DNA of 64,000 nt from Pseudomonas aeruginosa PAO1. GTDB taxonomy: Bacteria; Pseudomonadota; Gammaproteobacteria; Pseudomonadales; Pseudomonadaceae. The DNA lies in NCBI RefSeq assembly GCF_000006765.1, contig NC_002516.2; one strand, given 5' to 3'. How positions within the stretch are numbered: position 1 is the stretch's first letter; each line of letters opens with the position of its first letter. A program made the position numbers and the translations under genes. Below are positions 389-52,440 of this stretch, one piece after another. Below the pieces are notes generated by a model that was not told where the DNA came from, searched no databases, and saw only the letters and a program-made list of their open reading frames with translations.

Positions 389-1033
389 ATGCAGTACGAC
401 GGTCTGGCCTGGGCATTCGCGTTACTGGCCTTGCTGGCCGCCCTGGTCGCGGGGCGCATCCTCTTCGAACGCACCTGGTTCCTCGGCTGGCTGCGCGGCA
501 CCTGCGGCTTGGCCTTCGTCGCCGTGGCGGCGCTGCTGCTGGTGCTCGCCTGGGACCTGCGCAGCTATTCGCTGCTCAAGCCCGAGCAGCCGATGGCCAC
601 CCTGAGCTTCCAGGCCGAAGGGCCGCAGCGCTACCGGGTGCTGATCCAGGAGGGCGCCAACGAGCGCAGCGTGGTGCTGGACGGCGAACTCTGGCAACTG
701 GACGCGCGGATTTTCCGCTGGAAGGGGCTGGCCGCGTTGATCGGTCTGGCGCCGGGCTATCGCCTCGACGCGCTCAGCGGCCGCTTCCTGGCCCTCGAGC
801 AGCAGTCCCGGGGCCGCCGCCTGGGCTTGTCGCAGAGTCCGCTGGGGGTCGATCTCTGGCGCTGGCTGCGGGCCGGCGAGCACGACCTGTTCCTGTTCGA
901 GCCGCTGGCGGGGCGGGTGACTTTCCTGCCGATGGCGGACAAGGCGGTGTTCGCGGTGAACTACGGCGTCGCCGGGCTGCTTGCCGAGCCGATGAACCTG
1001 GCGGCCGAGGAGGCGCTCAGGGACTGGCGCTAG
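389..1033 (+). CDS. Hypothetical membrane-anchored protein
   Basis: 214-aa ORF, AAGGA RBS upstream, two N-terminal hydrophobic segments; stop overlaps the convergent LysR stop by 4 nt. Confidence 0.8.
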   Translation: MQYDGLAWAFALLALLAALVAGRILFERTWFLGWLRGTCGLAFVAVAALLLVLAWDLRSYSLLKPEQPMATLSFQAEGPQRYRVLIQEGANERSVVLDGELWQLDARIFRWKGLAALIGLAPGYRLDALSGRFLALEQQSRGRRLGLSQSPLGVDLWRWLRAGEHDLFLFEPLAGRVTFLPMADKAVFAVNYGVAGLLAEPMNLAAEEALRDWR

Positions 1034-1935
1034 GCCATGCGAAAAGCCGGGGCGGCGGCGAGCGCCTGGGCGGTTTCGCGAAAGCGTTCGATGAGTTCCG
1101 ACGGCGTGCGGTAGGCCAGCGCCAGCCGATAGGGAATTCGCGCCCGCCGCCCTTGCAGGGGACGAAAGGTGACCCCCGGCGGGCGCAACGGTTGTAGCAA
1201 CGAAGGCACTAGCGCGACGCCGATGCCGCCGGCCACCAGCCCGGCGATGGTCTGCATCTGCCGCGCCTCCTGCACCACCTCCGGGACGAAGCCGGCTGCC
1301 GCGCAGGCGGCGACGATCAGGTCGTGCATGCCCGGCCCATAGTGCCGTGGAAACAGCAGCCAGGGTTCTCCGGCCAGTTGTTCCAGGCGCAGGCGCGCAT
1401 GGCGTGCCAGCCGATGCCCTTCGGGCAATGCCACGCGCATGTCGCCGTCCACCAGTAGATGTGTGTACAGGCCGGGCTGGCGGTCGACCGGCAGGACGAT
1501 CAGGCCGGCATCGATGCGGTCTTCGCGCAACGCCTCCAGTTGCCCCGCGGTGGTGTCTTCCTGGAGCTGGAAGTCCAGCGCGCCATGCTGGTGGCGGAAC
1601 GCCTGGAGTATGCGCGGTAGCAGAATATTGATGGTGCTGTCGACGAACGCCAGGCGCAACGTTCTGCGTCCGCTGGCGGCGCTGCGCGCGGCCGCCAGGG
1701 TGCGTTCGGCCTGGGCCAGGGTGCGCCGGGCTTCGTCGAGGAACGCGCGGCCTGCCGGCGTCAGGCGGTGGATACGGTTGTCACGCTCCAGCAGGCTGGC
1801 GCCGACTTCTTCTTCCAGCCGCCGGATCGCAGTGGTCAGCGGTGGCTGGGCCATGTGCAGGCGCTCAGCGGCGCGGCGGAAGCTCAGCTCCTCGGCAACC
1901 GCGACGAACTGGCGGAACTGGCGTAAGTCGGCCAT
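1030..1935 (-). CDS. LysR-family transcriptional regulator
   Basis: MADLRQFRQFVAVAEELSFRRAAERLHMAQPPLTTAIRRLEEEVG HTH; start trimmed to the ATG at 1935; divergent from an SDR. Confidence 0.93.
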   Translation of the reverse strand: MADLRQFRQFVAVAEELSFRRAAERLHMAQPPLTTAIRRLEEEVGASLLERDNRIHRLTPAGRAFLDEARRTLAQAERTLAAARSAASGRRTLRLAFVDSTINILLPRILQAFRHQHGALDFQLQEDTTAGQLEALREDRIDAGLIVLPVDRQPGLYTHLLVDGDMRVALPEGHRLARHARLRLEQLAGEPWLLFPRHYGPGMHDLIVAACAAAGFVPEVVQEARQMQTIAGLVAGGIGVALVPSLLQPLRPPGVTFRPLQGRRARIPYRLALAYRTPSELIERFRETAQALAAAPAFRMA

Positions 1936-1939
1936 TGCG

Positions 1940-1954
1940 ATATCTCCCGGATAT
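1940..1954. promoter_or_regulatory. Candidate LysR recognition site (T-N11-A dyad)
   Basis: ATAT-ctcccgg-ATAT immediately upstream of the LysR start in the divergent intergenic region. Confidence 0.4.
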
Positions 1955-2066
1955 GGTGAGTTAAGAAAGACAGTATTGGATATATCGCGGCGGATCCGTC
2001 GAAAATCCATCCGTACGCTCGCTCTGGCCAGACGAGGCGTTCCATCCATTACAGAGGAAGCCCGTC

Positions 2067-2828
2067 ATGCACACTCATTCTCCAATCCCCCGTACCGCCC
2101 TGGTCACCGGCGGCTCGTCGGGCATCGGCCTGGCCATCGCCCGGCGCCTTCGGCAACAGGGTTATCGGATCGCCCTGGTGGCCCGTGATTCCCAGCGCCT
2201 GCAACGCGCTGCCGCCGAGTTGGGCGGTGTGCCCTGGATGGCCGCCGATCTTTCCCGCCGCGAAGCTGTCGAGGCGGTGGCCGCCTGGGTTGGCGACACC
2301 TTCCAGGGGCTCGACGTGCTGGTGAACAACGCCGGGTTCACCCGAAAGATCGCCGCCACCACTCCGCTGGCTGAGGCCGAGCGGGAATGGGATGCGCTGC
2401 TGGACGGCAACCTGAAAAGCGCGTTCCTCATGTCGCTGGCGGTGTTGCCGCATTTCGCGGAAGAGGGCGGGCGGATCATCCATATCGGATCGATCGCTGC
2501 GCAGACCGGTAGCGGCAGTCCTGGTGCGCTGGGCTATGCGGCAGCCAAGGCCGGCCTGCATGGCTTCGGCGTGGCCCTGGCGCGGGAACTCGGTTCGCGC
2601 GGGATCACGGTGAACAGCGTGGCGCCGGGTTACATCGCCGACACCCGGTTCTTTCCCGGCGGCCTCGATCCGCAACGGGTCGCCGCCATCGTCGGCGAGA
2701 CCCCGCTGGGCAGGACCGGCCGGGTCGAGGACATCGCCGCGGCGGTGGCCTGGCTGGCCTCGCCCGAGGCGGGGTTCGTCACCGGAACGGTGGTGTCGGT
2801 GAACGGTGGCTGGCGGGTCGGCAACTGA
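2067..2828 (+). CDS. Short-chain dehydrogenase/reductase (FabG-like)
   Basis: TGGSSGIG Rossmann motif, NNAG, catalytic YAAAK. Confidence 0.93.
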   Translation: MHTHSPIPRTALVTGGSSGIGLAIARRLRQQGYRIALVARDSQRLQRAAAELGGVPWMAADLSRREAVEAVAAWVGDTFQGLDVLVNNAGFTRKIAATTPLAEAEREWDALLDGNLKSAFLMSLAVLPHFAEEGGRIIHIGSIAAQTGSGSPGALGYAAAKAGLHGFGVALARELGSRGITVNSVAPGYIADTRFFPGGLDPQRVAAIVGETPLGRTGRVEDIAAAVAWLASPEAGFVTGTVVSVNGGWRVGN

Positions 2829-2944
2829 AGTGGAAGCGGCGGGTAACGCCTATGGGGGTACTCGTCCGGCTACCCGAGAACGCAGGTGAATAGCCGTGGG
2901 GCGCCTGTCCCGCGCTGGTGCGAGGCATTGGCAATCCTGAAATG

Positions 2945-2970
2945 AAAAGAGGGAGCCCTGGCTCCCTCTT
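2945..2970 (-). terminator. Intrinsic terminator between convergent SDR genes
   Basis: AAGAGGGAGC-cctg-GCTCCCTCTT 10-bp stem with short U-run on the minus strand. Confidence 0.65.
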
Positions 2971-2988
2971 CGCGCGTTCGCCGTTCCG

Positions 2989-3756
2989 TCAGGAAAGGAA
3001 GCCGCCGTCGACGTTCAGCGCCACGCCGGTGGTGTAGCTGGACGCTTCGCTAGCCAGGTAGAGCACGGCGCCTGCCATTTCGCTCGGCTCGGCCACGCGC
3101 TTGAGCGGGATGCGCTGCAGGGCGAGGTTGCGGATCGCGTCGTTCTTCACCAGCGCCGAAGCGAACTTGGTGTCGGTCAACCCTGGCAGGAGGGCGTTGC
3201 AGCGGATGCCGAACTGCGCGCATTCCTTGGCGAAGACCTTGGTCATGCTGATCACGGCGGCCTTGGTCACCGAGTAGATGCCCTGGAACTCGCCGGGCGA
3301 TACGCCGTTGATCGAGGCCACGTTGATGATGCTGCCGCCGCCGTGTTCCTTCATCAGCTTGCCGCCCTCGATGGACATGAAGTAGTAGCCGCGGATGTTG
3401 ACGTCGACGGTCTTCTGGAAGGCGCCGAGGTCGGTTTCCAGTACGTTGCAGAACTGCGGGTTGGTGGCGGCGTTGTTGACCAGGATGTCGAGGCGGCCGA
3501 ACTGCTCGCGGATCTGTGCGAAGACGTTCTGGATCTGCTCCATCTCGCCGATGTGGCAGGCGATCGCGGTGGCCTTGCCGCCCTCCGCGGTGATCGCGTC
3601 GGCGACCGCCTGGCAGCCATCGATCTTGCGGCTCGAGACGATCACGTGGGCGCCTTGCTGGGCCAGCAGCTTGGCTATCGCCTCGCCGATGCCGCGGCTG
3701 GCGCCGGAAACGAAGGCGATCTTGCCGTCGAGGTCGAACAGGTGGGTCTTGGACAT
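2989..3756 (-). CDS. Short-chain dehydrogenase/reductase, DHRS4/DHRS2-like
   Basis: SGASRGIG, VSSRK, CHIG, NNAATNP, YSVTK; the SSRK/CH.G/NAA.NP pattern is characteristic of DHRS4-type SDRs. Confidence 0.92.
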   Translation of the reverse strand: MSKTHLFDLDGKIAFVSGASRGIGEAIAKLLAQQGAHVIVSSRKIDGCQAVADAITAEGGKATAIACHIGEMEQIQNVFAQIREQFGRLDILVNNAATNPQFCNVLETDLGAFQKTVDVNIRGYYFMSIEGGKLMKEHGGGSIINVASINGVSPGEFQGIYSVTKAAVISMTKVFAKECAQFGIRCNALLPGLTDTKFASALVKNDAIRNLALQRIPLKRVAEPSEMAGAVLYLASEASSYTTGVALNVDGGFLS

Positions 3757-3780
3757 GGGCTATCCCCTTGTAGTGGTCGG

Positions 3781-4851
3781 TTACAGGCGGGAGCGCTCGA
3801 TGGCCTGCAGGCTCATCTGCTCCAGCAGCTTGTTCATCTGCACGAACTGGGCGAAACGCTTGTCCTGGGTCTGCCCGTGGTAGTAGCGGTAGTAGATCTG
3901 CTGGACGATGCCGGCAAGACGGAACAGGCCATAGGTGTAGTAGAAGTCCAGGTTGTCGATCGGTGGGATCCCGGCCCGCTCGGCGTAGTAGTCGGCGAAC
4001 TCCCGGCGGGTCAGCATGCCCGGCAGGTGGCTGGGCTGGCGGCGGGTCAGCTGCACCGGAGCCGGGTCGCCGGCTTCCACCCAGTAGGCGAGGGTATTGC
4101 CGAGGTCCATCAGCGGATCGCCGAGGGTGGCCAGTTCCCAGTCCAGCACGCCGATGATCTGCATCGGGTTTTCCGGGTCGAGGATCACGTTGTCGAAGCG
4201 GTAGTCGTTGTGCACGATGCCCGGCTTGTGGTGATCGGCCGGCTGCTTGTCCTTGAGCCAGGCCTTGACCGGTTCCCAGAGCGGCGCGTCGGGGGTCAGG
4301 GCCTTCTCGTAGCGGTCGGTCCAGCCGGCGATCTGGCGCTGCACGTAGCCGTCCGGGCGGCCCAGGTCGGCCAGTCCGCAGGCGGCGTAGTCGACGTTGT
4401 GCAGTTCGACGAACTTGTCGATGAAGCTCTTGCACAGGCTGCGGGTCTGTTGTTCGTCGAGATTCAGCTCAGGCGGCAGTTCGGCGCGCAGGATGATGCC
4501 CTTGACCCGTTCCATGACGTAGAACTCGGCGCCGATCACCGACTCGTCGGTGCAGTAGAGGTAGGCTTTCGGGCAGTAGGGGAAGCCTGCGTTCAACTGG
4601 TTCAGGATGCGGTATTCGCGGCCCATGTCGTGGGCCGACTTGGCCTTGTGGCCGAATGGCGGGCGACGCAGGACGAACTCCTGGCGCGGATACTCGATCA
4701 GGTAGGTCAGGTTGGACGCGCCACCGGGGAACTGGCTGATCTTCGGGGTGCCTTCGAGGCCGGGGATATGGGCTTTCAGGTACGGGTCGATGACGGCGGC
4801 GTCGAGTTCTTCGCCGGCGCGGATGCGAGTGGATTGGTCGGTCAGCGACAT
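3781..4851 (-). CDS. APH/choline-kinase-fold phosphotransferase, ACAD10/11-kinase/LvaA-like
   Basis: GGASNLTYL, VLRRPP, SAHDMGREYRIL, HNDYRFDNV, VLDWELATLGDPLMDLG; start trimmed to MSLTDQ with GAGAAGGG RBS. Confidence 0.9.
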   Translation of the reverse strand: MSLTDQSTRIRAGEELDAAVIDPYLKAHIPGLEGTPKISQFPGGASNLTYLIEYPRQEFVLRRPPFGHKAKSAHDMGREYRILNQLNAGFPYCPKAYLYCTDESVIGAEFYVMERVKGIILRAELPPELNLDEQQTRSLCKSFIDKFVELHNVDYAACGLADLGRPDGYVQRQIAGWTDRYEKALTPDAPLWEPVKAWLKDKQPADHHKPGIVHNDYRFDNVILDPENPMQIIGVLDWELATLGDPLMDLGNTLAYWVEAGDPAPVQLTRRQPSHLPGMLTRREFADYYAERAGIPPIDNLDFYYTYGLFRLAGIVQQIYYRYYHGQTQDKRFAQFVQMNKLLEQMSLQAIERSRL

Positions 4852-4941
4852 GGGGTTCCCTTCTCGTGGTGCCACGGCGGAGCCGCGGGAGCCGGTGCGC
4901 GCATCAGGCTGCGCAATGATGGTGATCGGCGATAATTGGCT

Positions 4942-4970
4942 AATCTAATGTCCTGTCCCGGCCCTCACAA
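4942..4970 (-). promoter_or_regulatory. Sigma70-type promoter for the kinase-SDR pair
   Basis: Minus strand TTGTGA-N17-TAGATT about 90 nt upstream of the kinase start. Confidence 0.5.
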
Positions 4971-5049
4971 GCCGCCGCCAGGCGTTATGGGCAAGCGTGT
5001 TGCCGCTCCATCACGGTCCCTGATCGTCGGCCTGGAGGAATGCCGGACG

Positions 5050-5083
5050 AAAAAAAACCGGAGCCGCGAGGGACTCCGGTTTT
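5050..5083 (-). terminator. Intrinsic terminator after the SCP2 gene
   Basis: AAAACCGGAG/CTCCGGTTTT stem followed by an 8-U run on the minus strand. Confidence 0.8.
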
Positions 5084-5108
5084 CCTTCTGGCATGGCGCC
5101 GGAAACGG

Positions 5109-5423
5109 TCAGACCGGGAACAGTTCGCCCAGCTTCATCGCCAGCATCATGTCGCCTTCGGCGCGCAGCTTGCCGGCCATGAAGGCCTGCATGCCGTCGG
5201 TCTCGCCGCTGGTGATGCCCTTCAGGGTTTCGCTGTCCATGATCAGGGTGACGTTGGGGTTCTCGGCGTCGCCCTGTACCACTTCGCAGGTACCGTCCTT
5301 GACGACCAGGTAGTGGTTGTCGCCGTCTTCGATGTTGAACTGGAACACCAGATCCAGGCCGGCGGCCGCGCTGGCGTTGAACTTGCTTTTCATGGTGGAG
5401 ACGATGTCAGCAACGGTGGTCAT
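5109..5423 (-). CDS. SCP2 sterol/lipid carrier domain protein
   Basis: 104 aa; FQFNIEDG, ENPNVTLIMD, DGMQAFMAGKLRAEGDMMLAMKL is the SCP2 C-terminal signature. Confidence 0.92.
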   Translation of the reverse strand: MTTVADIVSTMKSKFNASAAAGLDLVFQFNIEDGDNHYLVVKDGTCEVVQGDAENPNVTLIMDSETLKGITSGETDGMQAFMAGKLRAEGDMMLAMKLGELFPV

Positions 5424-5483
5424 GGGTTCTATTCCTTTCTTCTAGGGTTTTTTCGGCGACCGGAACGGTCGCGGTAGGCCGGC

Positions 5484-6194
5484 TCATCGATAGGTGATGA
5501 GTTCCGGCGCCTTCAACAGTTCCAGGTGCACGTGACTGTTGAAGGAAGCCAGGGACACTTCCTCGCCGCGGAATCTCAGGCGAGTCAGCGAGGTATTGAC
5601 GATCTGCCAGTTCAGCTCGAAGGCCTTGAGCGGCGGAACGCCGACGATCAGTTGGAGCAGGGCGGTAATGGTACCGCCGGAGGTGAACACGGCGACCCTG
5701 TCCTTGCCGCTGGCCTGCGCCAGCAGACGACGAAGACCGTCATGGACCTTATCGAGGAATTCCTGCCAGCTTTCCAGCCCATCTTTCTCATGGTTGCCGG
5801 AAACCCAGCGCGCGATGATGGTGGAGAACAGGCGCTGGAACTCGGCCCGATGCTCGGCCGCATGGCGAAGGATGTGCAAGGCTTCCGGCTGCTCATCGAG
5901 CAGGTCCGGCAGGTGCGCGCGGATCACCGCGTCGGCTTCGAATTCGTTGAACGCCGGATCGACTTCCAGCTCCGGCGTGGCCAGCCCGGAGGACTCCAGG
6001 CGTTCGAGGGCGGCGCGGGCGGTGTGCTGCTGGCGGCGCAAGCCGCCGCTGAGGACGCGGTCGAAACGGACGCCGAGGTTCAGCAGGTGGTCGCCGAGGA
6101 TTTCCGCCTGGCGGATGCCGGTCGGCGACAGCACGTCGTAGTCGTCGGCACCGAACGACGCCTGGCCATGTCGAATCAGGTAGATGCTGCCCAC
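5484..6194 (-). CDS. Histidine phosphatase superfamily protein
   Basis: N-terminal LIRHGQAS motif, LxRQQHTA, FNEF; GTG start with GAGG RBS; the second His position reads FTSGG. Confidence 0.88.
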   Translation of the reverse strand: MGSIYLIRHGQASFGADDYDVLSPTGIRQAEILGDHLLNLGVRFDRVLSGGLRRQQHTARAALERLESSGLATPELEVDPAFNEFEADAVIRAHLPDLLDEQPEALHILRHAAEHRAEFQRLFSTIIARWVSGNHEKDGLESWQEFLDKVHDGLRRLLAQASGKDRVAVFTSGGTITALLQLIVGVPPLKAFELNWQIVNTSLTRLRFRGEEVSLASFNSHVHLELLKAPELITYR

Positions 6195-6427: not shown

Positions 6428-7453
6428 GTGGAGTTCATTGCCGAATATGCGGGCTTTCTGGCCAGGACCGTGACCGTGCTGGCGGCGATCATCGTGGTGC
6501 TGGTGGTGATCGTCGCCCTGCGCGGCCGCGGCCGGCGCGGCGCAGGCGGGCACCTCGACGTGCAGAAGCTCAACGATTTCTACAAGGACCTGCGCGAGCG
6601 GGTCCGCCACAGCGTCCTCGACAAGGCCAGCCTCAAGGCCTTGCGCAAGGAGGAGAGCAAGGCGGCGAAGCAGGCGAAGAAACATCCTGAACAGAAGTCG
6701 CGGGTCTACGTGCTCGATTTCGACGGCGACATCAAGGCCTCGGCTACCGAGCAACTGCGTCACGAAGTGACTGCGGTGCTGAGCATGGCGGGCAAGGACG
6801 ACGAGGTGGTGCTGCGCCTGGAAAGCGGCGGTGGCATGGTCCATGGCTACGGCCTGGCGGCCTCGCAACTGGCGCGCATCCGCCAGGCCGGCGTGCCGCT
6901 GACCGTGTGCGTCGACAAGGTGGCGGCCAGCGGCGGCTACATGATGGCCTGCATCGGCGATCGGATCCTTTCCGCGCCCTTCGCCATCCTCGGCTCGATC
7001 GGCGTGGTGGCGCAGTTGCCCAACGTCCACCGGCTGTTGAAGAAGCACGATATTGACTTCGAGGTGCTTACCGCCGGCGAATACAAGCGTACGCTGACGG
7101 TATTCGGCGAGAACACCGAGAAGGGCCGGGAAAAGTTCCAGGAGGACCTGGAGGTGACCCACGAACTGTTCAAGAACTTCGTGGCCCACTACCGGCCGCA
7201 ACTGAACATGGACGAGATCGCCACCGGCGAGGTCTGGCTGGGCCAGGCCGCACTGGGCAAGCTGCTGGTGGACGAACTCAAGACCAGCGACGAGTACCTG
7301 GCCGAGCAGGCCAGGGAGCGCGATGTCTACCAGGTGCAATTCGTCGAGCGCAAGAGCCTGCAGGAACGCGTCGGCCTGGCCGCCAGCGTGGTTATCGACC
7401 GCGTGCTGGTGACCTGGTGGGGGCGGCTCAACCAGCAGAAGTTCTGGCAATAG
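6428..7453 (+). CDS. sohB: SohB S49-family inner-membrane peptidase
   Basis: N-terminal TM, LRLESGGG, KVAASGGYMMAC, GSIGVV, TAGEYKRTLT, EIATGEVW. Confidence 0.92.
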   Translation: MEFIAEYAGFLARTVTVLAAIIVVLVVIVALRGRGRRGAGGHLDVQKLNDFYKDLRERVRHSVLDKASLKALRKEESKAAKQAKKHPEQKSRVYVLDFDGDIKASATEQLRHEVTAVLSMAGKDDEVVLRLESGGGMVHGYGLAASQLARIRQAGVPLTVCVDKVAASGGYMMACIGDRILSAPFAILGSIGVVAQLPNVHRLLKKHDIDFEVLTAGEYKRTLTVFGENTEKGREKFQEDLEVTHELFKNFVAHYRPQLNMDEIATGEVWLGQAALGKLLVDELKTSDEYLAEQARERDVYQVQFVERKSLQERVGLAASVVIDRVLVTWWGRLNQQKFWQ

Positions 7454-7511
7454 GCCGGCGCCGACAGGGACGAACACGCTGTCTTCAGGGTTTTCACGAG
7501 AGGAGGTCGAA

Positions 7512-8504
7512 ATGGCTGTATTCAAGGCGTTGTGGGTGACGGAAGCGCCCCACGGCGTTTACGAAACGCAGGTGGTCGAGCGCGATACCGGCGACCTGCC
7601 GGCGGGCGACGTACTGATCCGCGTGCAGTATTCCTCGCTGAACTACAAGGATGCGCTGTCCGCCAGCGGCAACCGCGGGGTGACCCGCAAGTACCCGCAT
7701 ACCCCCGGCATCGATGCCGCCGGTGTGGTCGCCGAGTCCTCGGTGGCCGAGTTCGCGGCCGGTGACGAGGTGATCGTCACCGGCTACGACCTGGGCATGA
7801 ACACCGCCGGCGGTTTCGGCCAGTACATCCGCGTGCCCGCGGCCTGGGTGATCAAGCGCCCGCAAGGCCTGAGCCTGCGCGAGGCGATGATCCTCGGCAC
7901 CGCCGGCCTGACCGCGGCGCTCTGCGTCGAAAAGCTGGAGCGCAGCGGCCTGCGCCCCGACCATGGCTCGGTGCTGGTCACCGGCGCCAGCGGCGGGGTC
8001 GGCAGTATCGCCGTGGAACTGCTGGCCAAGCTCGGCTACACCGTGGCGGCCGCCACCGGCAAGCTGGAGCAGGCCGAGTTCCTCAACCGCCTGGGGGCCA
8101 AGCAGATCCTCGATCGCGCCACCGTGGCCGATGGCGTCGACAAGCCGTTGCTCAAGGAACAGTGGGCCGGCGCGGTGGACACCGTCGGCGGCGACATCCT
8201 CTTCAACGTGGTCAAGTCGTTGCAGTACGGCGGCAGCGTCGCCTGCTGCGGCCTGACCGCCGGAGCCGGCTTCAAGGCCTCGGTGCTGCCGTTCATCCTG
8301 CGCGGGGTCAACCTGCTCGGGGTGGACTCGGTGGAGCTGCCGCTGGTGGTCAAGGCATCCATGTGGGACAAGCTGTCGCTGCAATGGAAGCTCGACAACC
8401 TCGAAGAGGTGGCGCGCGAGATCGCCCTCGAAGAGCTGCCGGGGGCGATCAACCAGATCCTCGCCGGCAAGCTGGTCGGCCGGGTGCTGGTCAACCTCGG
8501 CTGA
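7512..8504 (+). CDS. MDR oxidoreductase, YhdH/AcuI (acryloyl-CoA reductase-like)
   Basis: SSLNYKDAL, PHTPGIDAAG, GTAGLTA, TGASGGVGS, LPFILRGVNLLGVDS; GGAGG RBS. Confidence 0.9.
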   Translation: MAVFKALWVTEAPHGVYETQVVERDTGDLPAGDVLIRVQYSSLNYKDALSASGNRGVTRKYPHTPGIDAAGVVAESSVAEFAAGDEVIVTGYDLGMNTAGGFGQYIRVPAAWVIKRPQGLSLREAMILGTAGLTAALCVEKLERSGLRPDHGSVLVTGASGGVGSIAVELLAKLGYTVAAATGKLEQAEFLNRLGAKQILDRATVADGVDKPLLKEQWAGAVDTVGGDILFNVVKSLQYGGSVACCGLTAGAGFKASVLPFILRGVNLLGVDSVELPLVVKASMWDKLSLQWKLDNLEEVAREIALEELPGAINQILAGKLVGRVLVNLG

Positions 8505-9366
8505 GGGCGTTGCCGGAGCCCAGCTCCGGCAACAGGTAGCCCGCCCATAGCGATTCGGCGAACTGCGGCCGGAAGAAGCCGAAATGGCCGATATGGCGGG
8601 CGCCGATTTCCTCGGGAGCGATGCGCCAGGCGGTTTTCGGCGCTTCGCGGTAGAAGCCCAGCAGCGACTCGATGCTGCGTCGGGACATCATTTCATCGTC
8701 GGTGAACGACAGCGACACGATGGGCGTGCGTACGGCGGAGAAGGCGCGGCGGATGGCCTCGCCATCCGCGAGGGCGTACTGCGGATGCAGGCACCAGCGT
8801 CGCCATTGTTCGATCACCCCGCGCGGCAGGTCGCCGACCATGCCCAGGCGGCGCCCGGGAAAATAGCCGAGCAGCGGCGTCAGCAGGGGCGCGACGAGGT
8901 ACCAGAACAACCAGACCTTGTTGCGCAACCGCGGGCTGTTTTCCTTCCAGTAGCCACTGCCGCTGGCGATGCTGAAGACCCTCTCGATACGCTCGCGCCC
9001 TTCGACGAAGGGCAGGATCTGGCCGCCCAGGCTATGGCCGATCCAGTACAGGGGCTTGCTCCCGCTCTCGGCGAGCGCGGCGGCGAGCATGGCGCTGCAG
9101 TCATGACGGGCCCAGCCCAGCACATCGACCTCGAGACCGCGCAGCGAGCCGTTGCGCGATTGCCCCATGCCCAGGTAGTCGAAGGTGATGGCCAGGTAGC
9201 CGCGCTCTGCCAGCCAGGCGGCGAAGGGCGCGTAGAACCGCTGTTCCACGCCCATCGCCGGGACGATCAGGAGATAGCCGCGCGGCTCCCCGGCAGGCCG
9301 GTACCAATGGCTGGCCAGCGGATGGCCGTTGCCGTTATCGATGAGGCGTGGTTGCGGAGGGTTCAT
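8491..9366 (-). CDS. Alpha/beta hydrolase (serine esterase/acyltransferase-like)
   Basis: GHSLGG nucleophile elbow, FTDDEM acid, IGHFGFF His; start trimmed to MNPPQP; 14-nt convergent overlap with the upstream gene. Confidence 0.85.
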   Translation of the reverse strand: MNPPQPRLIDNGNGHPLASHWYRPAGEPRGYLLIVPAMGVEQRFYAPFAAWLAERGYLAITFDYLGMGQSRNGSLRGLEVDVLGWARHDCSAMLAAALAESGSKPLYWIGHSLGGQILPFVEGRERIERVFSIASGSGYWKENSPRLRNKVWLFWYLVAPLLTPLLGYFPGRRLGMVGDLPRGVIEQWRRWCLHPQYALADGEAIRRAFSAVRTPIVSLSFTDDEMMSRRSIESLLGFYREAPKTAWRIAPEEIGARHIGHFGFFRPQFAESLWAGYLLPELGSGNALSRG

Positions 9367-9460
9367 GCCGGTCTCCGTGGTCTGTTCGCGGCTTCGAGAA
9401 TAGGGCTGGCCGCCAGGGCGCCTCCAGCCGGCCGAAAGCACGGCCGGGGCGCCCTGGCGG

Positions 9461-9898
9461 TCAGGCCTGGCTGACGTACATGGTGATCTCGGCGCGGAAT
9501 ACCGGCTTGTCGTCAACATAGGCGACCACCGGCACCACCAGGTTGCCGGTGGCTTGCCAGTCGATCTGGCTGCCGTCGGCCACTGCGCGCACGTCGCCAG
9601 TGGCCTTGGCCAGGTACTCGACGGTCATGCCGCGCGGAATCCAGCGATGGCCGGCGGGAATCGAGGCGTCGGTCATGGTCCCGGCGGCCAGTTCGGCGGC
9701 ATTGCACAGGGCGATGGCATGCACCGTGCCGATATGGTTCAGCACCTCGCGGCGCTTGGGGAAGGTGACTTCGGCATAGCCGGGACGCAGTTCGACGAAC
9801 TGCGGGGCGATGCTGGCGAAATAGGGTGCGAACTGGCCGATCATGGCGCTGAACTGGGCCGGGCCGACCTGCTGGTACATCTGCATCATCTGACTCAT
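9461..9898 (-). CDS. Hotdog-fold thioesterase-like protein (DUF4442/YiiD-like)
   Basis: APYFASIAP, NHIGTVHAIALCNAAELAAG, MTVEYLAKA. Confidence 0.87.
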   Translation of the reverse strand: MSQMMQMYQQVGPAQFSAMIGQFAPYFASIAPQFVELRPGYAEVTFPKRREVLNHIGTVHAIALCNAAELAAGTMTDASIPAGHRWIPRGMTVEYLAKATGDVRAVADGSQIDWQATGNLVVPVVAYVDDKPVFRAEITMYVSQA

Positions 9899-9958
9899 GG
9901 AAAACTCCGGGCGTTTCAGGATTGAAGATGTGTGCGCACCGGGGCAGTATACGAAGGT

Positions 9959-9986
9959 TAGAAATTTATTCTAGAAAAATATTCTA
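9959..9986. promoter_or_regulatory. Tandem overlapping dyads, probable TetR operator
   Basis: TAGAA-attta-TTCTA (9959-9973) and TAGAA-aaata-TTCTA (9972-9986) between the divergent thioesterase and TetR genes. Confidence 0.6.
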
Positions 9987-10020
9987 GTCAGCGTTTCGAC
10001 GATTATCGACAAGGACCGAC

Positions 10021-10602
10021 ATGGGCCGTTCTTCCCGCAAAGACGAGATTCTCCAGGCCGCCCTGGCCTGCTTCAGCGAGCATGGCGTAGACGCCACCAC
10101 CATCGAGATGATCCGCGACCGTTCCGGAGCGAGCATCGGTAGTCTCTACCACCATTTCGGCAACAAGGAACGCATCCATGGCGAACTCTACCTGGCCGGG
10201 ATCGGCCAGTACGCGGCGTTGCTCGAAGCCGGCTTCGCCAGGGCGCGCAGCGCCGAGGAAACGGTCAGGTTGCTGGTCACCAGCTACATAGACTGGGTCG
10301 TGGCGAATCCCGACTGGGCACGCTTCATCCTGCACAGCCGCGGGCGGGTAGAGGCGGGGGAGTTGGGCGAGCGCCTGCGGGCCGACAACCAGGCCCACTT
10401 CGCGCGGATCCATGCGGCGCTGGCGGGATATCGGGCCGAGGGCCTGTTCCGCGAGATGCCGGACGACTGCTTTGCTTCGGTGGTGATCGGCCCGGCCCAC
10501 GACCTTGCCCGCCAGTGGCTGGCCGGGCGAACCCGGGTGGCGCTGGCCGACTGTCGCGAACTGCTGGCGCAGGTGGCCTGGGACAGCGTGCGGGCGGCCT
10601 GA
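10021..10602 (+). CDS. TetR-family transcriptional regulator
   Basis: ILQAALACFSEHGVDATTIEMIRDRSGASIGSLYHHFGNKE HTH. Confidence 0.93.
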   Translation: MGRSSRKDEILQAALACFSEHGVDATTIEMIRDRSGASIGSLYHHFGNKERIHGELYLAGIGQYAALLEAGFARARSAEETVRLLVTSYIDWVVANPDWARFILHSRGRVEAGELGERLRADNQAHFARIHAALAGYRAEGLFREMPDDCFASVVIGPAHDLARQWLAGRTRVALADCRELLAQVAWDSVRAA

Positions 10603-15888: not shown

Positions 15889-19593
<3,705 letters not shown>

Positions 19594-19673
19594 GGATGGA
19601 CCTGGCGTCAGTGGGCGGAAAGGTGAAAAGCATAACAAAGGCAGGGGCTTTCCGGCCGGGGGTGGTCGGACCA

Positions 19674-19702
19674 TGAATTTCATTCAAGTTGAAGGATGTT
19701 CA
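19674..19702. promoter_or_regulatory. Tandem MetR boxes
   Basis: TGAAtttcaTTCA (19674-19686) and TGAAggatgTTCA (19690-19702) fit TGAA-N5-TTCA, 80-110 nt upstream of metH. Confidence 0.75.
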
Positions 19703-21253: not shown

Positions 21254-23542
21254 ATGTTGCCAAGACCGTTGGTTGGGTTGGCCTTCGTTTTGTCGTCTTT
21301 TATCCAGTCTGTTTCCGCTGCTGAAATTTCCTATAGCCGTGACGTCCAGCCGATCTTTACCGCCAAGTGCGTCGCCTGCCACGCCTGCTACGATTCGCCC
21401 TGCCAGCTCAACCTGAGCAGCGCCGAGGGCGCGCAGCGCGGCGCCAACCAACTGCCGGTCTACGACGGCACGCGGACCAAGGCGCAGGAAACCACCCGCC
21501 TGTACCTCGATGCGCACGGTGCCGACGCCTGGCGGCGCAAGGACTTCTGGTCGGTGCTCGAACCGCAGGACGGCCAGGCCGCACTGATGGCGCGGATGCT
21601 CGAGCTTGGCCACAGCCAGCCGTTGCAGCCGAATGCGAAGATCCCCGAAGGCCTGGACATTTCGATCAACCGCGCCAACCAGTGCCCGACGCCGGCCAGC
21701 ATCGATGCGTTCATCCGCAAGAACCCAGGTTCCGGCATGCCTTTCGCGGTGGCCGGGCTGAGCGACGACGAATACGCCACTTTGCAGAAGTGGCTGGCCG
21801 CGGGCGCCCCGGTCGACCAGCAGCCGTTGCGGCCGACCGCCGCCGAGGCGCGCCAGGTGGCCAGCTGGGAGCGTTTCCTCAACCAGCCTGGGGCCAAGCA
21901 GAGCCTGGTCTCGCGCTGGCTCTACGAGCACCTGTTCCTGGCGCACCTGTATTTCCCGGAACAGGGCGCGCCCGGCCACTTCTTCCAGCTGGTGCGTTCA
22001 CGCACGCCCAGCGGCCAGCCGATCGACCCGATCCCGACCCGGCGTCCCAACGACGATCCGGGCAACAGCTTCTATTACCGCCTCTGGCCGATCCAGGGCG
22101 TGATCGTACACAAGACGCACATCACCTATCCGCTGACGGCGAAGAAGCTGGAACGCGTCCAGGAGCTGTTCTTCGGCACCCAGTGGAACACCGACAAGGT
22201 TCCCGGCTACGGCGTGCAGAGCCGTGCCAACCCGTTCGCCACCTTCGCCGCGATCCCGCCACGGGCGCGCTACCAGTTCATGCTGGACAACGCCGAATAC
22301 TTCACCCGTACCTTCATCCGCGGGCCGGTGTGCCGTGGACAGATCGCCACCGACGTGATCCGCGACAACTTCTGGGTGGTATTCCAGGACCCCGAGCAGG
22401 ACCTGTTCGTCACCGACGCCAACTTCCGCGCGCAGAGCGAGCCGCTGCTGGCCTTGCCGGGGCAGATCGACGAGCTGAAGAACCTGCTCGGCCTGTGGAG
22501 CGCCTACCGGGACAAGCGCAACGAGTACGAAGACCTGCGCCAGGACGTCTACGCCGACGCGCCGCCGCCGACCTGGAACACGATCTGGCACGGCAACGAC
22601 AACGCCCTGCTGAGCATCTTCCGCCAGTTCGACAGCGCCTCGGTGCGCAAGGGACTGCTTGGCGAGGTACCGCAGACCCTGTGGCTGATGGACTACCCGC
22701 TGTTCGAGCGAACCTACTACGGGCTGGTGGTGAACTTCGATGTCTTCGGCAACGTCTCGCACCAGGCGCAGACGCGGCTGTACTTCGACCTGATCCGCAA
22801 CGGCGCCGAGCAGAACTTCCTCCGCCTGATGCCGGTCGACGCGCGCCAGCCGTTGCTCGACGACTGGTACCAGAACAGCGGCAAGCTGAAGATGTGGATG
22901 GACTACCAGGCCTTCGACGACGACACGCCGAGCGCGCTGGGATTGCCGGAGAAGCAGCCGAAGAAGGCCTTCGCCGAAGAACTGCTGCGTCGCTACGGCG
23001 ACCTCAATGCGCGTCCCGACCCGATCAACCGCTGCCTGGACGGCAACTGCTATCGACCGGGCATCGACCGCGAACTGCAGGACGCCGAGCAGGCCTTCAG
23101 TCGCCTGGTGAGCCGGCCGGCGGCCGGCCTCAAGGTCATCGAGCGCTTCCCCGAGGCGTCCATGCTGCGGATACGTACGTCCAGCGGCAAGCGCGAGGTC
23201 TATACCGTGCTGCGCAACCGCGCGCACAGCAATGTCGCCTTCATGCTCGGCGAGTCGCTGCGCTACCAGCCGGGCCTGGACACCCTGACGATCTACCCGG
23301 GCGTGCTGTCCAGCTACCCGAACTTCATGTTCGATCTGCCGGCGACGGATGCCGAGGCCTTCGTCGGCGCCCTGGAGGCGGCGAAGAGCGGCGAGGACTT
23401 CGACAAGGTGGTCGAACGCTGGGGCGTGCGCCGCAGCAATCCGCAGTTCTGGAGCTACTTCCACGATCTCGAGGCGTACATCCGCGAAACCGAGCCGGTC
23501 GAGGCGGGCGCACTGGACATGAACCGCTACGAGAACCTCTGA
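21254..23542 (+). CDS. cti: Fatty acid cis/trans isomerase (periplasmic, heme c)
   Basis: Signal peptide, CVACH heme-c motif, CYDSPCQLNL, FIRGPVCRGQIA, 762 aa. Confidence 0.95.
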   Translation: MLPRPLVGLAFVLSSFIQSVSAAEISYSRDVQPIFTAKCVACHACYDSPCQLNLSSAEGAQRGANQLPVYDGTRTKAQETTRLYLDAHGADAWRRKDFWSVLEPQDGQAALMARMLELGHSQPLQPNAKIPEGLDISINRANQCPTPASIDAFIRKNPGSGMPFAVAGLSDDEYATLQKWLAAGAPVDQQPLRPTAAEARQVASWERFLNQPGAKQSLVSRWLYEHLFLAHLYFPEQGAPGHFFQLVRSRTPSGQPIDPIPTRRPNDDPGNSFYYRLWPIQGVIVHKTHITYPLTAKKLERVQELFFGTQWNTDKVPGYGVQSRANPFATFAAIPPRARYQFMLDNAEYFTRTFIRGPVCRGQIATDVIRDNFWVVFQDPEQDLFVTDANFRAQSEPLLALPGQIDELKNLLGLWSAYRDKRNEYEDLRQDVYADAPPPTWNTIWHGNDNALLSIFRQFDSASVRKGLLGEVPQTLWLMDYPLFERTYYGLVVNFDVFGNVSHQAQTRLYFDLIRNGAEQNFLRLMPVDARQPLLDDWYQNSGKLKMWMDYQAFDDDTPSALGLPEKQPKKAFAEELLRRYGDLNARPDPINRCLDGNCYRPGIDRELQDAEQAFSRLVSRPAAGLKVIERFPEASMLRIRTSSGKREVYTVLRNRAHSNVAFMLGESLRYQPGLDTLTIYPGVLSSYPNFMFDLPATDAEAFVGALEAAKSGEDFDKVVERWGVRRSNPQFWSYFHDLEAYIRETEPVEAGALDMNRYENL

Positions 23543-51940: not shown

Positions 51941-52440
51941 GGTCGCTCGCGGGAGAGGATCGGTTGGATAACTTGGCATCGTGACGATGACGCTTTGATT
52001 GCAGGACGATGAAGGCCGCTTCGCGGGATGCCCGGCGATGCTTTCCGTTGGAACTGTCGGGGTCGTCTTGCCGTCGCCTCGCGCCGACGAACTACGAGGT
52101 GCCGGGAAGTGCTATTTCATTTCTCCCGGTTTTTTATGAAATACGCATCGTAGAGTTCTGATATTTGCCCGCTGGGTTATTTAGTCGATTTGCCGTGCCA
52201 GGTGATGGGGGTTGTTTATAAAGTATTATAACTTTTTGATTATATATTGTTTATCAATTAGATAGGCGTGTGATGGCTAAATGGCTGCATGTTTTCCAGG
52301 GGTTATCTAAATTGAATTTTTCATGGGGGTTTTCTTAGTCGTTATATATAAAGTCAGACTCGCCTTTTATTTAAAAGCTGCTATTTCTGGATTACATGGT
52401 GCGGCCGTTCGGTCGCTGCTTGACAAGAGGAATGTCGGAA

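Follow-up and report, generated by a model that had tools for sequence, protein, structure and literature searches.

The mammalian proteins ACAD11 and ACAD10 combine a kinase domain with an acyl-CoA dehydrogenase (ACAD) domain, and ACAD10 adds a HAD domain (PMC12440821, Rashan 2025; PMC11342911, Paquay 2024). Neither phosphorylates the free acid. A stand-alone kinase (Q63VL0) and an ACAD of Burkholderia pseudomallei can stand in for the corresponding domains of ACAD10 in vitro, with 4-hydroxyhexanoyl-CoA as substrate; they resemble the proteins considered here in being stand-alone bacterial enzymes. In R. toruloides, a knockout of the ACAD11 homologue abolishes growth on ricinoleate. [quoted passage not shown] According to the citing papers through which we know this system, the SDR makes 4-hydroxyacyl-CoA, which is phosphorylated by the kinase and then loses the phosphate by elimination through an ACAD10/11-type ACAD, the same logic as that proposed below; the identity of LvaA to the ACAD10/11 kinases is reported there as only 29%. 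In Arabidopsis, the ACAD10/11-like IBR3 and the DHRS4-like IBR1/SDRa are both required for indole-3-butyrate conversion, and SDRa groups with DHRS4 in a published tree. Lastly, a stand-alone 'ACAD10 kinase domain' homologue of Caldalkalibacillus thermarum phosphorylates 1-O-alkylglycerol in vitro, with CoA as an activator (Ye et al. 2026 preprint, bioRxiv 10.1101/2025.09.10.675409).

In the 64-kb window, the whole stretch of DNA that was analysed, the minus strand carries four ORFs, at the positions where the sequence-only reading had placed a module of four co-oriented genes. The kinase shares 99% identity with a P. aeruginosa protein, so the four genes are PA1831 to PA1828. They form not one but two transcription units, each followed by a strong terminator hairpin. 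The upstream unit starts with PA1831 (5484..6194), a branch 1 histidine phosphatase of 236 aa (Pfam His_Phos_1, 8.7e-25), followed by PA1830 (5109..5423), a stand-alone SCP2-fold protein of 104 aa (Pfam SCP2, 1.2e-21). It is closed by an intrinsic terminator made of a hairpin and T8 at about 5049-5088 on the minus strand (-31.2 kcal/mol, z = -3.48, 0/200 shuffles equally stable), the hairpin and T-run being kept at loci L002, L003, L010 and L011. As for the kinase gene PA1829 (ORF 3781-4875; Pfam APH, 5.8e-58), its true start is likely the ATG at 4851, which gives a gene at 3781..4851 and a protein of 356 aa, the length of the annotated orthologues. PA1828 (2989..3756), a classical NADP-type SDR of 255 aa (Pfam adh_short_C2, 3.9e-64), starts 24 bp downstream in the same operon, and a second minus-strand hairpin (2938..2971; -21.9 kcal/mol, z = -2.2) followed by a T-rich run closes this unit.

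Consensus and spacing point to a putative sigma-70 promoter for the kinase-SDR operon at 4942..4970 on the minus strand. Its -35 element TTGTGA (4965-4970) is separated by a 17-nt spacer from its -10 element TAGATT (4942-4947), which lies within ATTAGATTAG; in an alignment of 13 Pseudomonas regions upstream of the kinase, both ATTAGATTAG and CTTGT are invariant. A candidate operator, the palindrome ATCA-N7-TGAT (5010..5024), is found upstream of this promoter and occurs only once in the 64-kb window. It also reads as ATC-N9-GAT, the shape of a LysR-type box, and its half-sites are kept in most of the 13 upstream regions despite the differing upstream gene among species.

The kinase motifs on which the sequence-only reading had relied (GGASNLTY, AHDMGREY, HNDYRFDN and VLDWELATLGDP) are all present in the translation, and its choice of an ACAD10/11-type kinase over an antibiotic APH was borne out. 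The PDB matches of PA1829 are 9o56 (1e-90), 3dxp (7e-54) and mouse ACAD11 (1.6e-50, with 33% identity to the kinase domain), compared with 2e-4 for a macrolide kinase, and its NCBIfam scores fall far under the cut-offs for APH(3') (23.8 versus 205 bits) and Mph(A) (20.2 versus 550 bits). To judge by its sequence, PA1829 is thus an ACAD10/ACAD11-type small-molecule kinase mislabelled by its current annotation, 'aminoglycoside phosphotransferase'. It retains the catalytic Arg/Glu/HxD/N/DWE set described for such kinases, and the residues invariant in the family (R62, E79, H214, D216, N221, D237, W238 and R172) are all kept by the Pseudomonas kinases. Once the numbering is shifted by +1, as the catalytic Asp dictates, R172 aligns with the Arg corresponding to ACAD11 R176, modelled as a CoA contact in the ACAD11 paper. 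The best solved match, PDB 9o56 (44% identity over about 330 residues), is probably the C. thermarum homologue, which shares with PA1829 its stand-alone architecture, the Arg in beta-3 and the HxDxK/R and DWE motifs. However, PA1829 has HNDYR where the C. thermarum enzyme has HYDYK, and in our tree the latter branches with sequences of Acidobacteria and Verrucomicrobia, away from Pseudomonas, whose kinases form a sister branch to the clade that is operonic with ACADs. PA1829 would act as a 4-hydroxyacyl-CoA 4-kinase.

No ACAD is encoded in the 64-kb window (tblastn, best E = 0.09), as the sequence-only reading had noted in placing the partner elsewhere, and the partner does appear to lie at another locus. 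We compared 65 related kinase loci outside Pseudomonas, where linkage meant a gene on the kinase's own strand and no more than 3 kb away, and 13 Pseudomonas loci. An ACAD11-type ACAD (6e-133 against human ACAD11, 4e-41 against the next ACAD family) is the most frequent neighbour, operonic with the kinase in 49/65 non-Pseudomonas loci, and 62 of the 65 have either this ACAD or the histidine phosphatase. The usual gene order is LysR | ACAD-kinase-HisPhos-SDR, and the independent RefSeq annotation of Azospirillum and Pseudoalteromonas gives LysR | ACAD-(SDR)-kinase-HisPhos-SDR. Further recurring neighbours are beta-oxidation genes, namely those for 3-hydroxyacyl-CoA dehydrogenase (6 loci), enoyl-CoA hydratase (2 loci) and a thiolase. 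ACAD-kinase gene fusions were also found, and fusions link the parts physically. In Pseudomonas this ancestral operon is split. On sequence grounds, its missing ACAD11-type partner is PA2550 (7.6e-145 against ACAD11, 6e-43 against conventional ACADs), which shares 63-65% identity with the kinase-linked ACADs and retains an orthologous, divergent LysR gene, PA2551, whose product matches the kinase-operon LysRs at 42-47% identity. A cluster look-up indicated that the sampled Pseudomonas, among them P. aeruginosa, P. putida, P. syringae and fluorescens-group strains, keep an ACAD11-type ACAD.

PA1828 belongs to NCBIfam NF005446 (485 bits, cut-off 373). The DHRS4 hallmarks ascribed to it earlier are upheld insofar as its best PDB matches are human and pig DHRS4 (3o4r and 2zat), but its score margin over bacterial SDRs is narrow. 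It adjoins the kinase in 13/13 Pseudomonas loci. Outside Pseudomonas, SDRs of this type are found near the kinase in 8/65 loci, and other SDR families take that position elsewhere. Orthologues with 60-78% identity occur in an ACAD-kinase-HisPhos operon or at most 3.5 kb from the kinase in Mangrovitalea, Marinobacter, Dyella, Azospirillum, a SAR324 bacterium and a Pseudomonadota MAG (L071). We also found a natural fusion of the kinase with a PA1828-type SDR, with the ACAD next door. PA1828 may interconvert 4-oxoacyl-CoA and 4-hydroxyacyl-CoA.

The two genes of the upstream unit fared differently. Homologues of PA1831 with 30-41% identity are linked to the kinase, by the definition given above, in 40/65 non-Pseudomonas loci, and those at L081 and L082 carry a RefSeq histidine phosphatase annotation; PA1831 is the ancestral operon partner of the kinase. 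The family conserves the RHG nucleophile motif and a His near the C-terminus, while a conserved Ser (TSGG) replaces the canonical second His. Its place in the proposed module is supported by linkage; on the other hand, PA1831 is transcribed separately from the kinase and, like PA1830, is absent from the published list of genes shifted at least five-fold by oxylipins. Among solved structures, PA1830 comes closest to archaeal SCP2-like proteins, the SCP2 domain of MFE-2 and SCP2 itself. An SCP2 gene lies beside the kinase in 7/13 Pseudomonas loci and near it in 0/65 others, even at E <= 10. The idea that it serves the pathway as acyl carrier is therefore unsupported, and we regard it as a Pseudomonas-only neighbour.

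Published RNA-seq data, obtained in a delta-odsR strain, show that 10-HOME induces PA2550 42-fold, PA1829 21-fold and PA1828 18-fold, that 7,10-DiHOME induces each about 8-fold, and that oleate induces none of them (PMC6377657 Table S3); they show induction and do not prove catabolism. The proposal of a pathway for longer-chain oxo or hydroxy fatty acids is strengthened by this response to a hydroxy fatty acid but not to oleate; its substrate in P. aeruginosa is nonetheless one that we infer, and alkylglycerol kinase activity is reported in the clade, namely for the C. thermarum enzyme, the single close relative that has been characterised. On balance, we think that PA1829 and PA1828 probably supply the kinase and reductase steps of a bacterial pathway for the rescue of 4-hydroxyacyl-CoA. 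This pathway is best read as a three-locus version of the known kinase/ACAD route, a homologue of the mammalian ACAD10/ACAD11 system and an analogue of LvaA/LvaC/LvaD of P. putida, in which the chemistry of ACAD10/11 and LvaA/LvaC, like the co-induction by 10-HOME (PMC6377657), is taken from the literature. The beta-oxidation of mid-chain hydroxy fatty acids would stall at 4-hydroxy(enoyl)-acyl-CoA, and three rounds starting from 10-HOME or 7,10-DiHOME would be expected to yield 4-hydroxy-2E-dodecenoyl-CoA. PA1828 would interconvert the 4-oxo and 4-hydroxy forms with NADP(H), PA1829 would phosphorylate the 4-hydroxyl of the CoA ester, and the unlinked PA2550 would remove the phosphate by elimination to give a normal 2-enoyl-CoA. 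PA1831, in a role resembling that of the ACAD10 HAD domain, probably dephosphorylates 4-phospho intermediates that are off the pathway or in excess. Most likely, then, PA1829, the neighbouring reductase and PA2550 let the cell burn hydroxylated fatty acids, its own oxylipin signals included.

Compared with ACAD10/11, PA1829 corresponds to the kinase domain, with the same catalytic residues, and PA2550 to the ACAD domain. A phosphatase accompanies the kinase both here and in ACAD10, but it is a histidine phosphatase rather than a HAD domain; moreover, the Pseudomonas parts are separate proteins at three loci, and a DHRS4-like SDR shares the kinase operon. An ACAD10/11-type enzyme is likewise paired with a DHRS4-group SDR in the case of IBR3 and IBR1, whose link is genetic, not operonic, in a eukaryotic, peroxisomal setting, with an aromatic substrate bearing a C4 side chain. 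The PA1831-PA1828 locus was also considered as an lva operon, and this was rejected: it lacks LvaB, a CoA ligase and an ACAD in cis and has a histidine phosphatase instead, and the inducers of PA1829 and PA1828 are C18 oxylipins, not levulinate.

It is unlikely that PA1829 is instead a CoA-activated alkyl- or acylglycerol kinase, with the histidine phosphatase as its lipid-phosphate partner and the SDR and SCP2 serving glycerolipid metabolism, not beta-oxidation. An ether-lipid salvage role has been proposed for the ACAD10 kinase and HAD domains, the kinase-phosphatase pairing is widely kept in bacterial loci (40/65), and several prokaryotic homologues, the C. thermarum enzyme included, phosphorylate chimyl alcohol (Ye et al., bioRxiv 10.1101/2025.09.10.675409), although the same authors leave undecided how the two activities relate. 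Yet a CoA-thioester substrate is also compatible with the CoA dependence, the ACAD11-type ACAD is the commonest neighbour (49/65) with beta-oxidation genes recurring alongside, and hydroxy fatty acids jointly induce the kinase, the SDR and PA2550. Moreover, no ether lipids are known from Pseudomonas.

We find it similarly improbable that the kinase and SDR work on oxylipins or some other hydroxylated lipid and pass no product on to PA2550, for instance to inactivate the 10-HOME or 7,10-DiHOME signals or to detoxify lipid-peroxidation carbonyls, with a shared regulon explaining the co-induction. Many oxidoreductases are indeed co-induced, and the kinase-SDR pair of Pseudomonas is separate from the ACAD, with its own conserved promoter and candidate operator; no obvious operator common to the PA1829 and PA2550 promoters was seen, the PA2550 palindrome differing from ATCA-N7-TGAT. 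Such a role fits poorly with the retention of all family-invariant residues, the modelled CoA-contact Arg included, with the sister position of the Pseudomonas kinases to the ACAD-operonic clade, with the inactivity of ACAD10/11 on the free acid and with the ACAD11-type ACAD kept in the sampled species. As for an aminoglycoside or macrolide phosphotransferase conferring antibiotic resistance, as implied by the Pfam APH domain and the current annotation and discussed in two papers that name PA1829 as a possible resistance determinant (PMC6377657, bioRxiv 850446), it is very improbable in view of the PDB and NCBIfam scores and of a conserved genomic context of lipid catabolism.

Beyond the kinase-SDR operon, a second SDR gene, PA1827 (2067..2828, plus strand; Pfam SDR), is convergent with PA1828, and the LysR gene PA1826 (1030-2049, minus strand) is divergent from it. 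PA1827, with 31% identity to PA1828, is no orthologue of the other operon SDRs; its membership in the pathway is uncertain, but it is co-induced, its mRNA being raised 9.5-fold by 10-HOME (PMC6377657 Table S3).

On the minus strand, Pfam matches and ORF translations define a histidine phosphatase gene (PA1831, 5484-6194), a gene for an SCP2 protein of 104 aa (PA1830, 5109-5423), an APH-fold kinase gene (PA1829, 3781-4851) and a classical SDR gene (PA1828, 2989-3756). In the literature, PA1829 goes under the name of a putative aminoglycoside phosphotransferase, PA1828 under that of a short-chain dehydrogenase and PA1831 under that of a gpmA-like gene. The product of PA1829 matches a 'phosphotransferase family protein' of P. 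aeruginosa at 99% identity and has the APH/protein-kinase-like fold (PF01636, 5.8e-58, residues 46-287). Its best match in the PDB is 9o56 (1e-90, 44% identity), followed by 3dxp (7e-54, 35% identity) and the mouse ACAD11 kinase domain (1.6e-50, 33% identity). The entry 9o56 names no organism; its size and name make it probable that this is the 'ACAD10 kinase' homologue from Caldalkalibacillus thermarum described by Ye et al. (2026 preprint, bioRxiv 10.1101/2025.09.10.675409). After these ACAD10/11-type kinases the matches drop to 6e-10 and then to 2e-4 for a macrolide kinase, so that antibiotic, choline and thiamine kinases are all more distant. Scores against the NCBIfam models of antibiotic kinases are about one-tenth of the cut-offs or lower, namely 23.8 bits for APH(3') (cut-off 205), 20.2 for Mph(A) (550) and 23.9 for Cph (390), and we rejected an antibiotic phosphotransferase on these grounds. 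The sequence-only reading had assigned the protein to the ACAD10/11 type rather than to the antibiotic APHs on the strength of four kinase motifs; all four are present in the PA1829 translation, and the assignment is borne out by the ACAD11 match and by the failure to reach any of the resistance cut-offs. By its sequence, PA1829 thus belongs to the ACAD10/ACAD11-type small-molecule kinases, and the same comparisons make the label 'aminoglycoside phosphotransferase', repeated in PMC6377657 and in bioRxiv 850446, a misnomer.

The catalytic set of the family is present in PA1829, with a beta-3 Arg in place of Lys, the alpha-C Glu, the Asp of HxDxK/R, the metal-binding Asn and the DWE motif. In an alignment of 32 family sequences, R62, E79, H214, D216, N221, D237 and W238 are invariant, and E239 is found in at least 90% of them. 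Ye et al. name the residues matching these catalytic positions as essential, and the PA1829 catalytic residues align with D220 and N225 of ACAD11. The invariant R172 aligns with the Arg that matches ACAD11 R176 after a numbering offset of +1, fixed by the catalytic Asp D220. In the ACAD11 paper, R176 and R86 are modelled contacts to CoA; the Arg next to the alpha-C Glu in PA1829 is R78, with which the numbering of R86 does not reconcile. As for the phylogeny of the kinase, three references anchored the tree, namely mouse ACAD11, 3dxp and the C. thermarum enzyme, and no LvaA-like protein was present among the matches listed. The sister of the Pseudomonas clade is a large clade of proteobacterial and actinobacterial sequences with ACAD-kinase operons. 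ACAD11 and 3dxp lie on a long branch, and their placement is uncertain.

The four genes form two transcription units, one with the phosphatase and SCP2 genes and the other with the kinase and SDR genes, and not a single operon. This follows from a hairpin after the SCP2 gene and a conserved putative promoter before the kinase gene. The hairpin, directly 3' of PA1830 and followed by T8, is very stable (-31.2 kcal/mol, z = -3.5), and there is a second one 3' of PA1828; both were found by folding and passed over by the terminator scan because of its loop limit. The gap between PA1829 and PA1828 is 24 bp. Alignment showed that the region 5' of the kinase gene is kept in 13 Pseudomonas species, even where the upstream gene differs. 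The conserved promoter region (4935-5030, minus strand) includes an ATCA-N7-TGAT palindrome, which occurs once in the window, and a conserved GCAACACGC..CCTATAA block. A putative -35 element TTGTGA is followed after 17 nt by a -10 element TAGATT within the invariant ATTAGATTAG. In the same alignment, some 47 additional nt separate the -10 element from the ribosome-binding site in P. aeruginosa and in no other species.

The translation of PA1828 contains the classical SDR motifs GASRGIG, SSRK, NNAA and YSVTK (Pfam 3.9e-64), and the basic pair of SSRK after beta-2 points to NADP as the cofactor. Its top PDB matches are human and pig DHRS4 (160 and 159 bits), and none of the other matches listed, given without organisms, is named as another human SDR family. 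For the DHRS4 type proposed from the sequence the margin is narrow, with 157 bits for a gluconate 5-dehydrogenase from a bacterium, and PA1828 can be called DHRS4-like only in the sense of best-hit ranking. In PA1831, which belongs to branch 1 of the histidine phosphatase superfamily, the motif IRHGQ at residues 7-11 supplies the RHG nucleophile His, and RHgQASF is kept in 44 operon-linked homologues. Throughout this subfamily, the second catalytic His of the SHG-type motif is replaced by a conserved Ser within TSGG; in Sts-type phosphatases the SHG motif occupies the aligned position. The 44 homologues share a His near the C-terminus (FNxxxHL), which may substitute for the missing one.

To describe the genomic context of the kinase in other bacteria, we used a profile-based scan with one genome per species. 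It gave 80 kinase loci (44-99% identity) in Pseudomonadota, Actinomycetota, Myxococcota, Acidobacteriota, Planctomycetota, Verrucomicrobiota, Bacteroidota and Chloroflexota. Neighbours on the same strand as the kinase and within 3 kb were counted in the 65 loci from outside Pseudomonas. The search for a linked LvaC-like ACAD that had been proposed was successful, as an ACAD of the ACAD11 type lies beside the kinase in 49 of these 65 loci (human ACAD11 6e-133, next ACAD family 4e-41). A PA1831-type histidine phosphatase is found in 40, and one or the other in 62. An SDR of any kind is present in 43 loci and one of the PA1828 type (at least 45% identity) in eight, and the SDR slots of these operons are filled by at least three unrelated SDR families. 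SCP2 neighbours the kinase in none of the 65, and no SCP2 ORF was detected within 10 kb on either side, even at E <= 10. PA1830 does have the SCP2 fold according to Pfam; its proposed membership in the pathway finds no support, given the lack of a conserved association with the kinase, the ACAD or the phosphatase, and we leave SCP2 out of the module. Genes for 3-hydroxyacyl-CoA dehydrogenase (six loci), enoyl-CoA hydratase (two loci), a thiolase, TetR regulators and alpha/beta hydrolases also recur beside the kinase.

The recurrent gene order is ACAD-(SDR)-kinase-histidine phosphatase-SDR, with a divergent LysR gene in front. Clean examples of this order come from Mangrovitalea, Marinobacter, Dyella and one Pseudomonadota MAG, and RefSeq has annotated it independently in Azospirillum and Pseudoalteromonas. 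Two fusion proteins (P0162 and P0145) link the parts physically. One, of 608 aa, joins the kinase to a PA1828-type SDR with 58% identity to PA1828 over its full 255 aa, and an ACAD gene is immediately downstream (L084, 643-3720). The other, of 759 aa, has an N-terminal ACAD and a C-terminal kinase, the opposite of the domain order of ACAD11. We also noted a protein of 810 aa (P0151) in which an N-terminal kinase is followed by about 470 residues without a Pfam match. The 90%-identity cluster of P0341, with a Marinobacter ACAD as its representative, also contains histidine phosphatase, kinase and SDR sequences, presumably chained via read-through or fused gene calls in a tightly packed operon; such mixed clusters should not be taken for one protein family.

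In Pseudomonas, kinase and SDR genes are adjacent in all 13 loci, and none of the 13 has an ACAD gene near the kinase. The phosphatase gene is upstream of the kinase in six genomes of the aeruginosa or oleovorans type and SCP2 in seven; in fluorescens-type genomes the upstream genes vary (a D-2-hydroxyacid dehydrogenase in three loci, unrelated genes elsewhere) and are uninformative. A query with the Mangrovitalea ACAD was swamped by Marinobacter-like clusters, the large ones comprising Marinobacter and Bermanella only. PA2550 was traced with its published qPCR primers as DNA probes, followed by a protein search limited to one region of the query and by a look-up of sequence clusters. One of the probe hits was a fragment of an ACAD11-type gene with both primer sites, and the two later steps ended at a protein of 409 aa, 'acyl-CoA dehydrogenase [Pseudomonas aeruginosa]', present on 223 contigs. 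Its gene lies in the order AMP-binding enzyme, SDR, thiolase, ACAD, LysR (divergent), 409-aa ACAD and TerC. Of the four PA2550 primers in the literature, three have exact matches at this locus, and we therefore take the gene to be PA2550. Its product matches ACAD11 at 7.6e-145, against 6e-43 for any conventional ACAD, and shares 63-65% identity with the ACADs linked to the kinase. The divergent LysR, PA2551, has 42-47% identity to the LysRs that accompany ACAD-kinase operons in four other genera; PA1826, the LysR in the window, has 24% identity and was discarded as the orthologue. The partner ACAD that was expected elsewhere in the genome is thus most likely PA2550. An ACAD of the ACAD11 type next to an orthologous LysR argues that Pseudomonas has split an ancestral operon three ways, into LysR plus ACAD, kinase plus SDR, and histidine phosphatase (plus SCP2). 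The PA2550 promoter carries the palindrome CATGAATGTTCATG; a comparison of this promoter with that of PA1829, and with LysR-ACAD intergenic regions of other genera, revealed no common operator. Past PA2551 and divergent from PA2550 (L091, 1-5827), genes for a conventional ACAD, a thiolase, an SDR and an AMP-binding CoA ligase follow in the PA2552-PA2555 layout. The split pathway, which has no CoA ligase in cis, may draw on this set for that enzyme and for further missing steps.

Published expression data bear on the dispersed genes. In Supplementary Table 3 of Martinez et al. 2019 (PMC6377657), which reports on a delta-odsR strain, the oxylipin 10-HOME induced PA2550 42-fold, PA1829 21-fold, PA1828 17.7-fold and PA1827 9.5-fold. 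The corresponding values were 8.1-, 8.0-, 8.6- and 7.9-fold with 7,10-DiHOME and 1.1-, 1.6-, 1.1- and 1.8-fold with oleate. The proteomics table also lists PA1828, PA1829 and PA2550; PA1830 and PA1831 are missing from both the induced-gene and the proteomics lists. The authors described PA1827-PA1829 and PA2550 only as 'oxidoreductases' and 'aminoglycoside phosphotransferase'.

Three rounds of beta-oxidation on 10-HOME would bring its hydroxyl to C4 and its double bond to C2, and 7,10-DiHOME would yield the same 4-hydroxy-2E-dodecenoyl-CoA after its 3-hydroxy stage. 10-HOME is 10-hydroxy-8E-octadecenoate, and intermediates of the 4-hydroxy-2-enoyl-CoA type are poorly handled by ordinary beta-oxidation enzymes. 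In the established route, the LvaA or ACAD10/11 kinase phosphorylates the 4-hydroxyl and LvaC or the ACAD domain eliminates the phosphate to give the 2-enoyl-CoA. A Burkholderia pseudomallei kinase/ACAD pair carries out phosphorylation and phosphate elimination in vitro, and one yeast needs its ACAD11 homologue for growth on the 12-hydroxy acid ricinoleate. On the model of this route, PA1829 would be the 4-hydroxyacyl-CoA kinase and PA2550 the phospho-eliminating ACAD, and PA1828 would interconvert 4-oxo and 4-hydroxy CoA esters in an LvaD-like step. PA1831 would act as a phosphatase on the 4-phospho intermediates, by analogy with the HAD domain of ACAD10, which restrains the kinase of that protein. 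Since the ACAD10 kinase prefers the R form, one could speculate that PA1828 might also correct stereochemistry.

Ye et al. reported a CoA-activated phosphorylation of 1-O-alkyl- and acylglycerols by the ACAD10 kinase and by several of its prokaryotic homologues, and PA1829 might accordingly be a CoA-activated alkyl-/acylglycerol kinase with the histidine phosphatase as its lipid-phosphate partner. Its 44% identity to the alkylglycerol-phosphorylating C. thermarum enzyme speaks for such an activity, and the conserved bacterial kinase-phosphatase pairing fits it as well. We nevertheless regard it as improbable as the main role in P. aeruginosa, as ACAD11-type and beta-oxidation genes dominate the genomic context and hydroxy fatty acids induce the kinase together with PA2550. 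PA1829 may also have a dual function on 4-hydroxyacyl-CoA and alkylglycerol. As for an lva operon, which combines a kinase, LvaB, an ACAD, an SDR and a CoA ligase, only kinase and SDR are co-operonic here; no ACAD is encoded in the 64 kb, as had been stated from the sequence, and no CoA ligase among the scanned ORFs flanking the four genes. The PA1828-PA1831 locus probably works like ACAD10/11, whose kinase family includes PA1829, and like the Lva pathway, as a split member that is neither an lva operon nor the site of an antibiotic kinase. The kinase-phosphatase pairing is conserved, bacteria using a histidine phosphatase and ACAD10 a HAD domain. A published tree places Arabidopsis IBR1 with DHRS4, and a cross-kingdom IBR3/IBR1 parallel for PA1828 is therefore a reasonable analogy.

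We propose, tentatively and with more doubt than confidence, that the bacterial set of ACAD11-type ACAD, kinase, histidine phosphatase and DHRS4-like SDR represents an ancestral, complete 4-hydroxy/4-oxo-acyl-CoA pathway. If so, a phosphatase and a DHRS4/IBR1-type reductase would be integral to the pathway in eukaryotic peroxisomes, and DHRS4 and IBR1, for which the recurrence of a DHRS4-like SDR suggests candidate functions, would gain a physiological substrate. P. aeruginosa would degrade its own autoinducers 10-HOME and 7,10-DiHOME via the split PA2550, PA1829-PA1828 and PA1831, and the pathway would set the lifetime of the oxylipin quorum-sensing signal, whose turnover route thereby becomes testable. 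The reading as a 4-hydroxyacyl-CoA kinase pathway in itself gives a coherent role to PA2550, PA1829 and PA1828, which rank among the genes with the strongest response to oxylipins. It also turns a gene that has been mentioned as a potential determinant of aminoglycoside resistance into that of a lipid-catabolic kinase. The system also offers a tractable bacterial model for the dispute over the substrate of the ACAD10/11 kinases, 4-hydroxyacyl-CoA or alkylglycerol. In the accessible literature, we found no description of the conserved histidine phosphatase partner or of a connection between this pathway and the oxylipin regulon of P. aeruginosa.

Next to the kinase-SDR unit, the LysR gene PA1826 and the SDR gene PA1827 (SDR by Pfam) form a divergent pair (1030-2828), with an ATATC-N5-GATAT palindrome at about 1940-1954 in their intergenic region. 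Orthology of PA1827 with the second SDR of the operons was considered and set aside, its identity to the other operon SDRs being at most 31%. On the other side, the phosphatase gene is adjoined by sohB, which encodes an S49 protease, and by the gene of an acrylyl-CoA reductase-type MDR of the YhdH/AcuI family (6428-8504), a synteny that recurs in several Pseudomonas loci. In Psychrobacter, sohB is also 5' of the ACAD-kinase-histidine phosphatase operon (L024, L027), and a YhdH-like gene flanks this operon in two further loci (L056, L079). A YhdH-like enoyl reductase could be relevant to 4-hydroxy-2-enoyl-CoA; the gene is missing from the published oxylipin-induced list. Between it and the cysI region lie genes for an alpha/beta hydrolase, a DUF4442 protein, whose fold we take to be hotdog/thioesterase-like, and a TetR regulator (8491-10602); alpha/beta hydrolase and TetR genes are also found beside the kinase operon in other phyla. 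Farther along the window are metH (15889-19683), a fatty acid cis/trans isomerase gene (cti, 21254-23542) and the gene of a BapA-like adhesin of 2483 aa with more than 20 bacterial Ig repeats (52396-59847). The marked AT skew and the raised G+C content between 54 and 58 kb are due to the adhesin.
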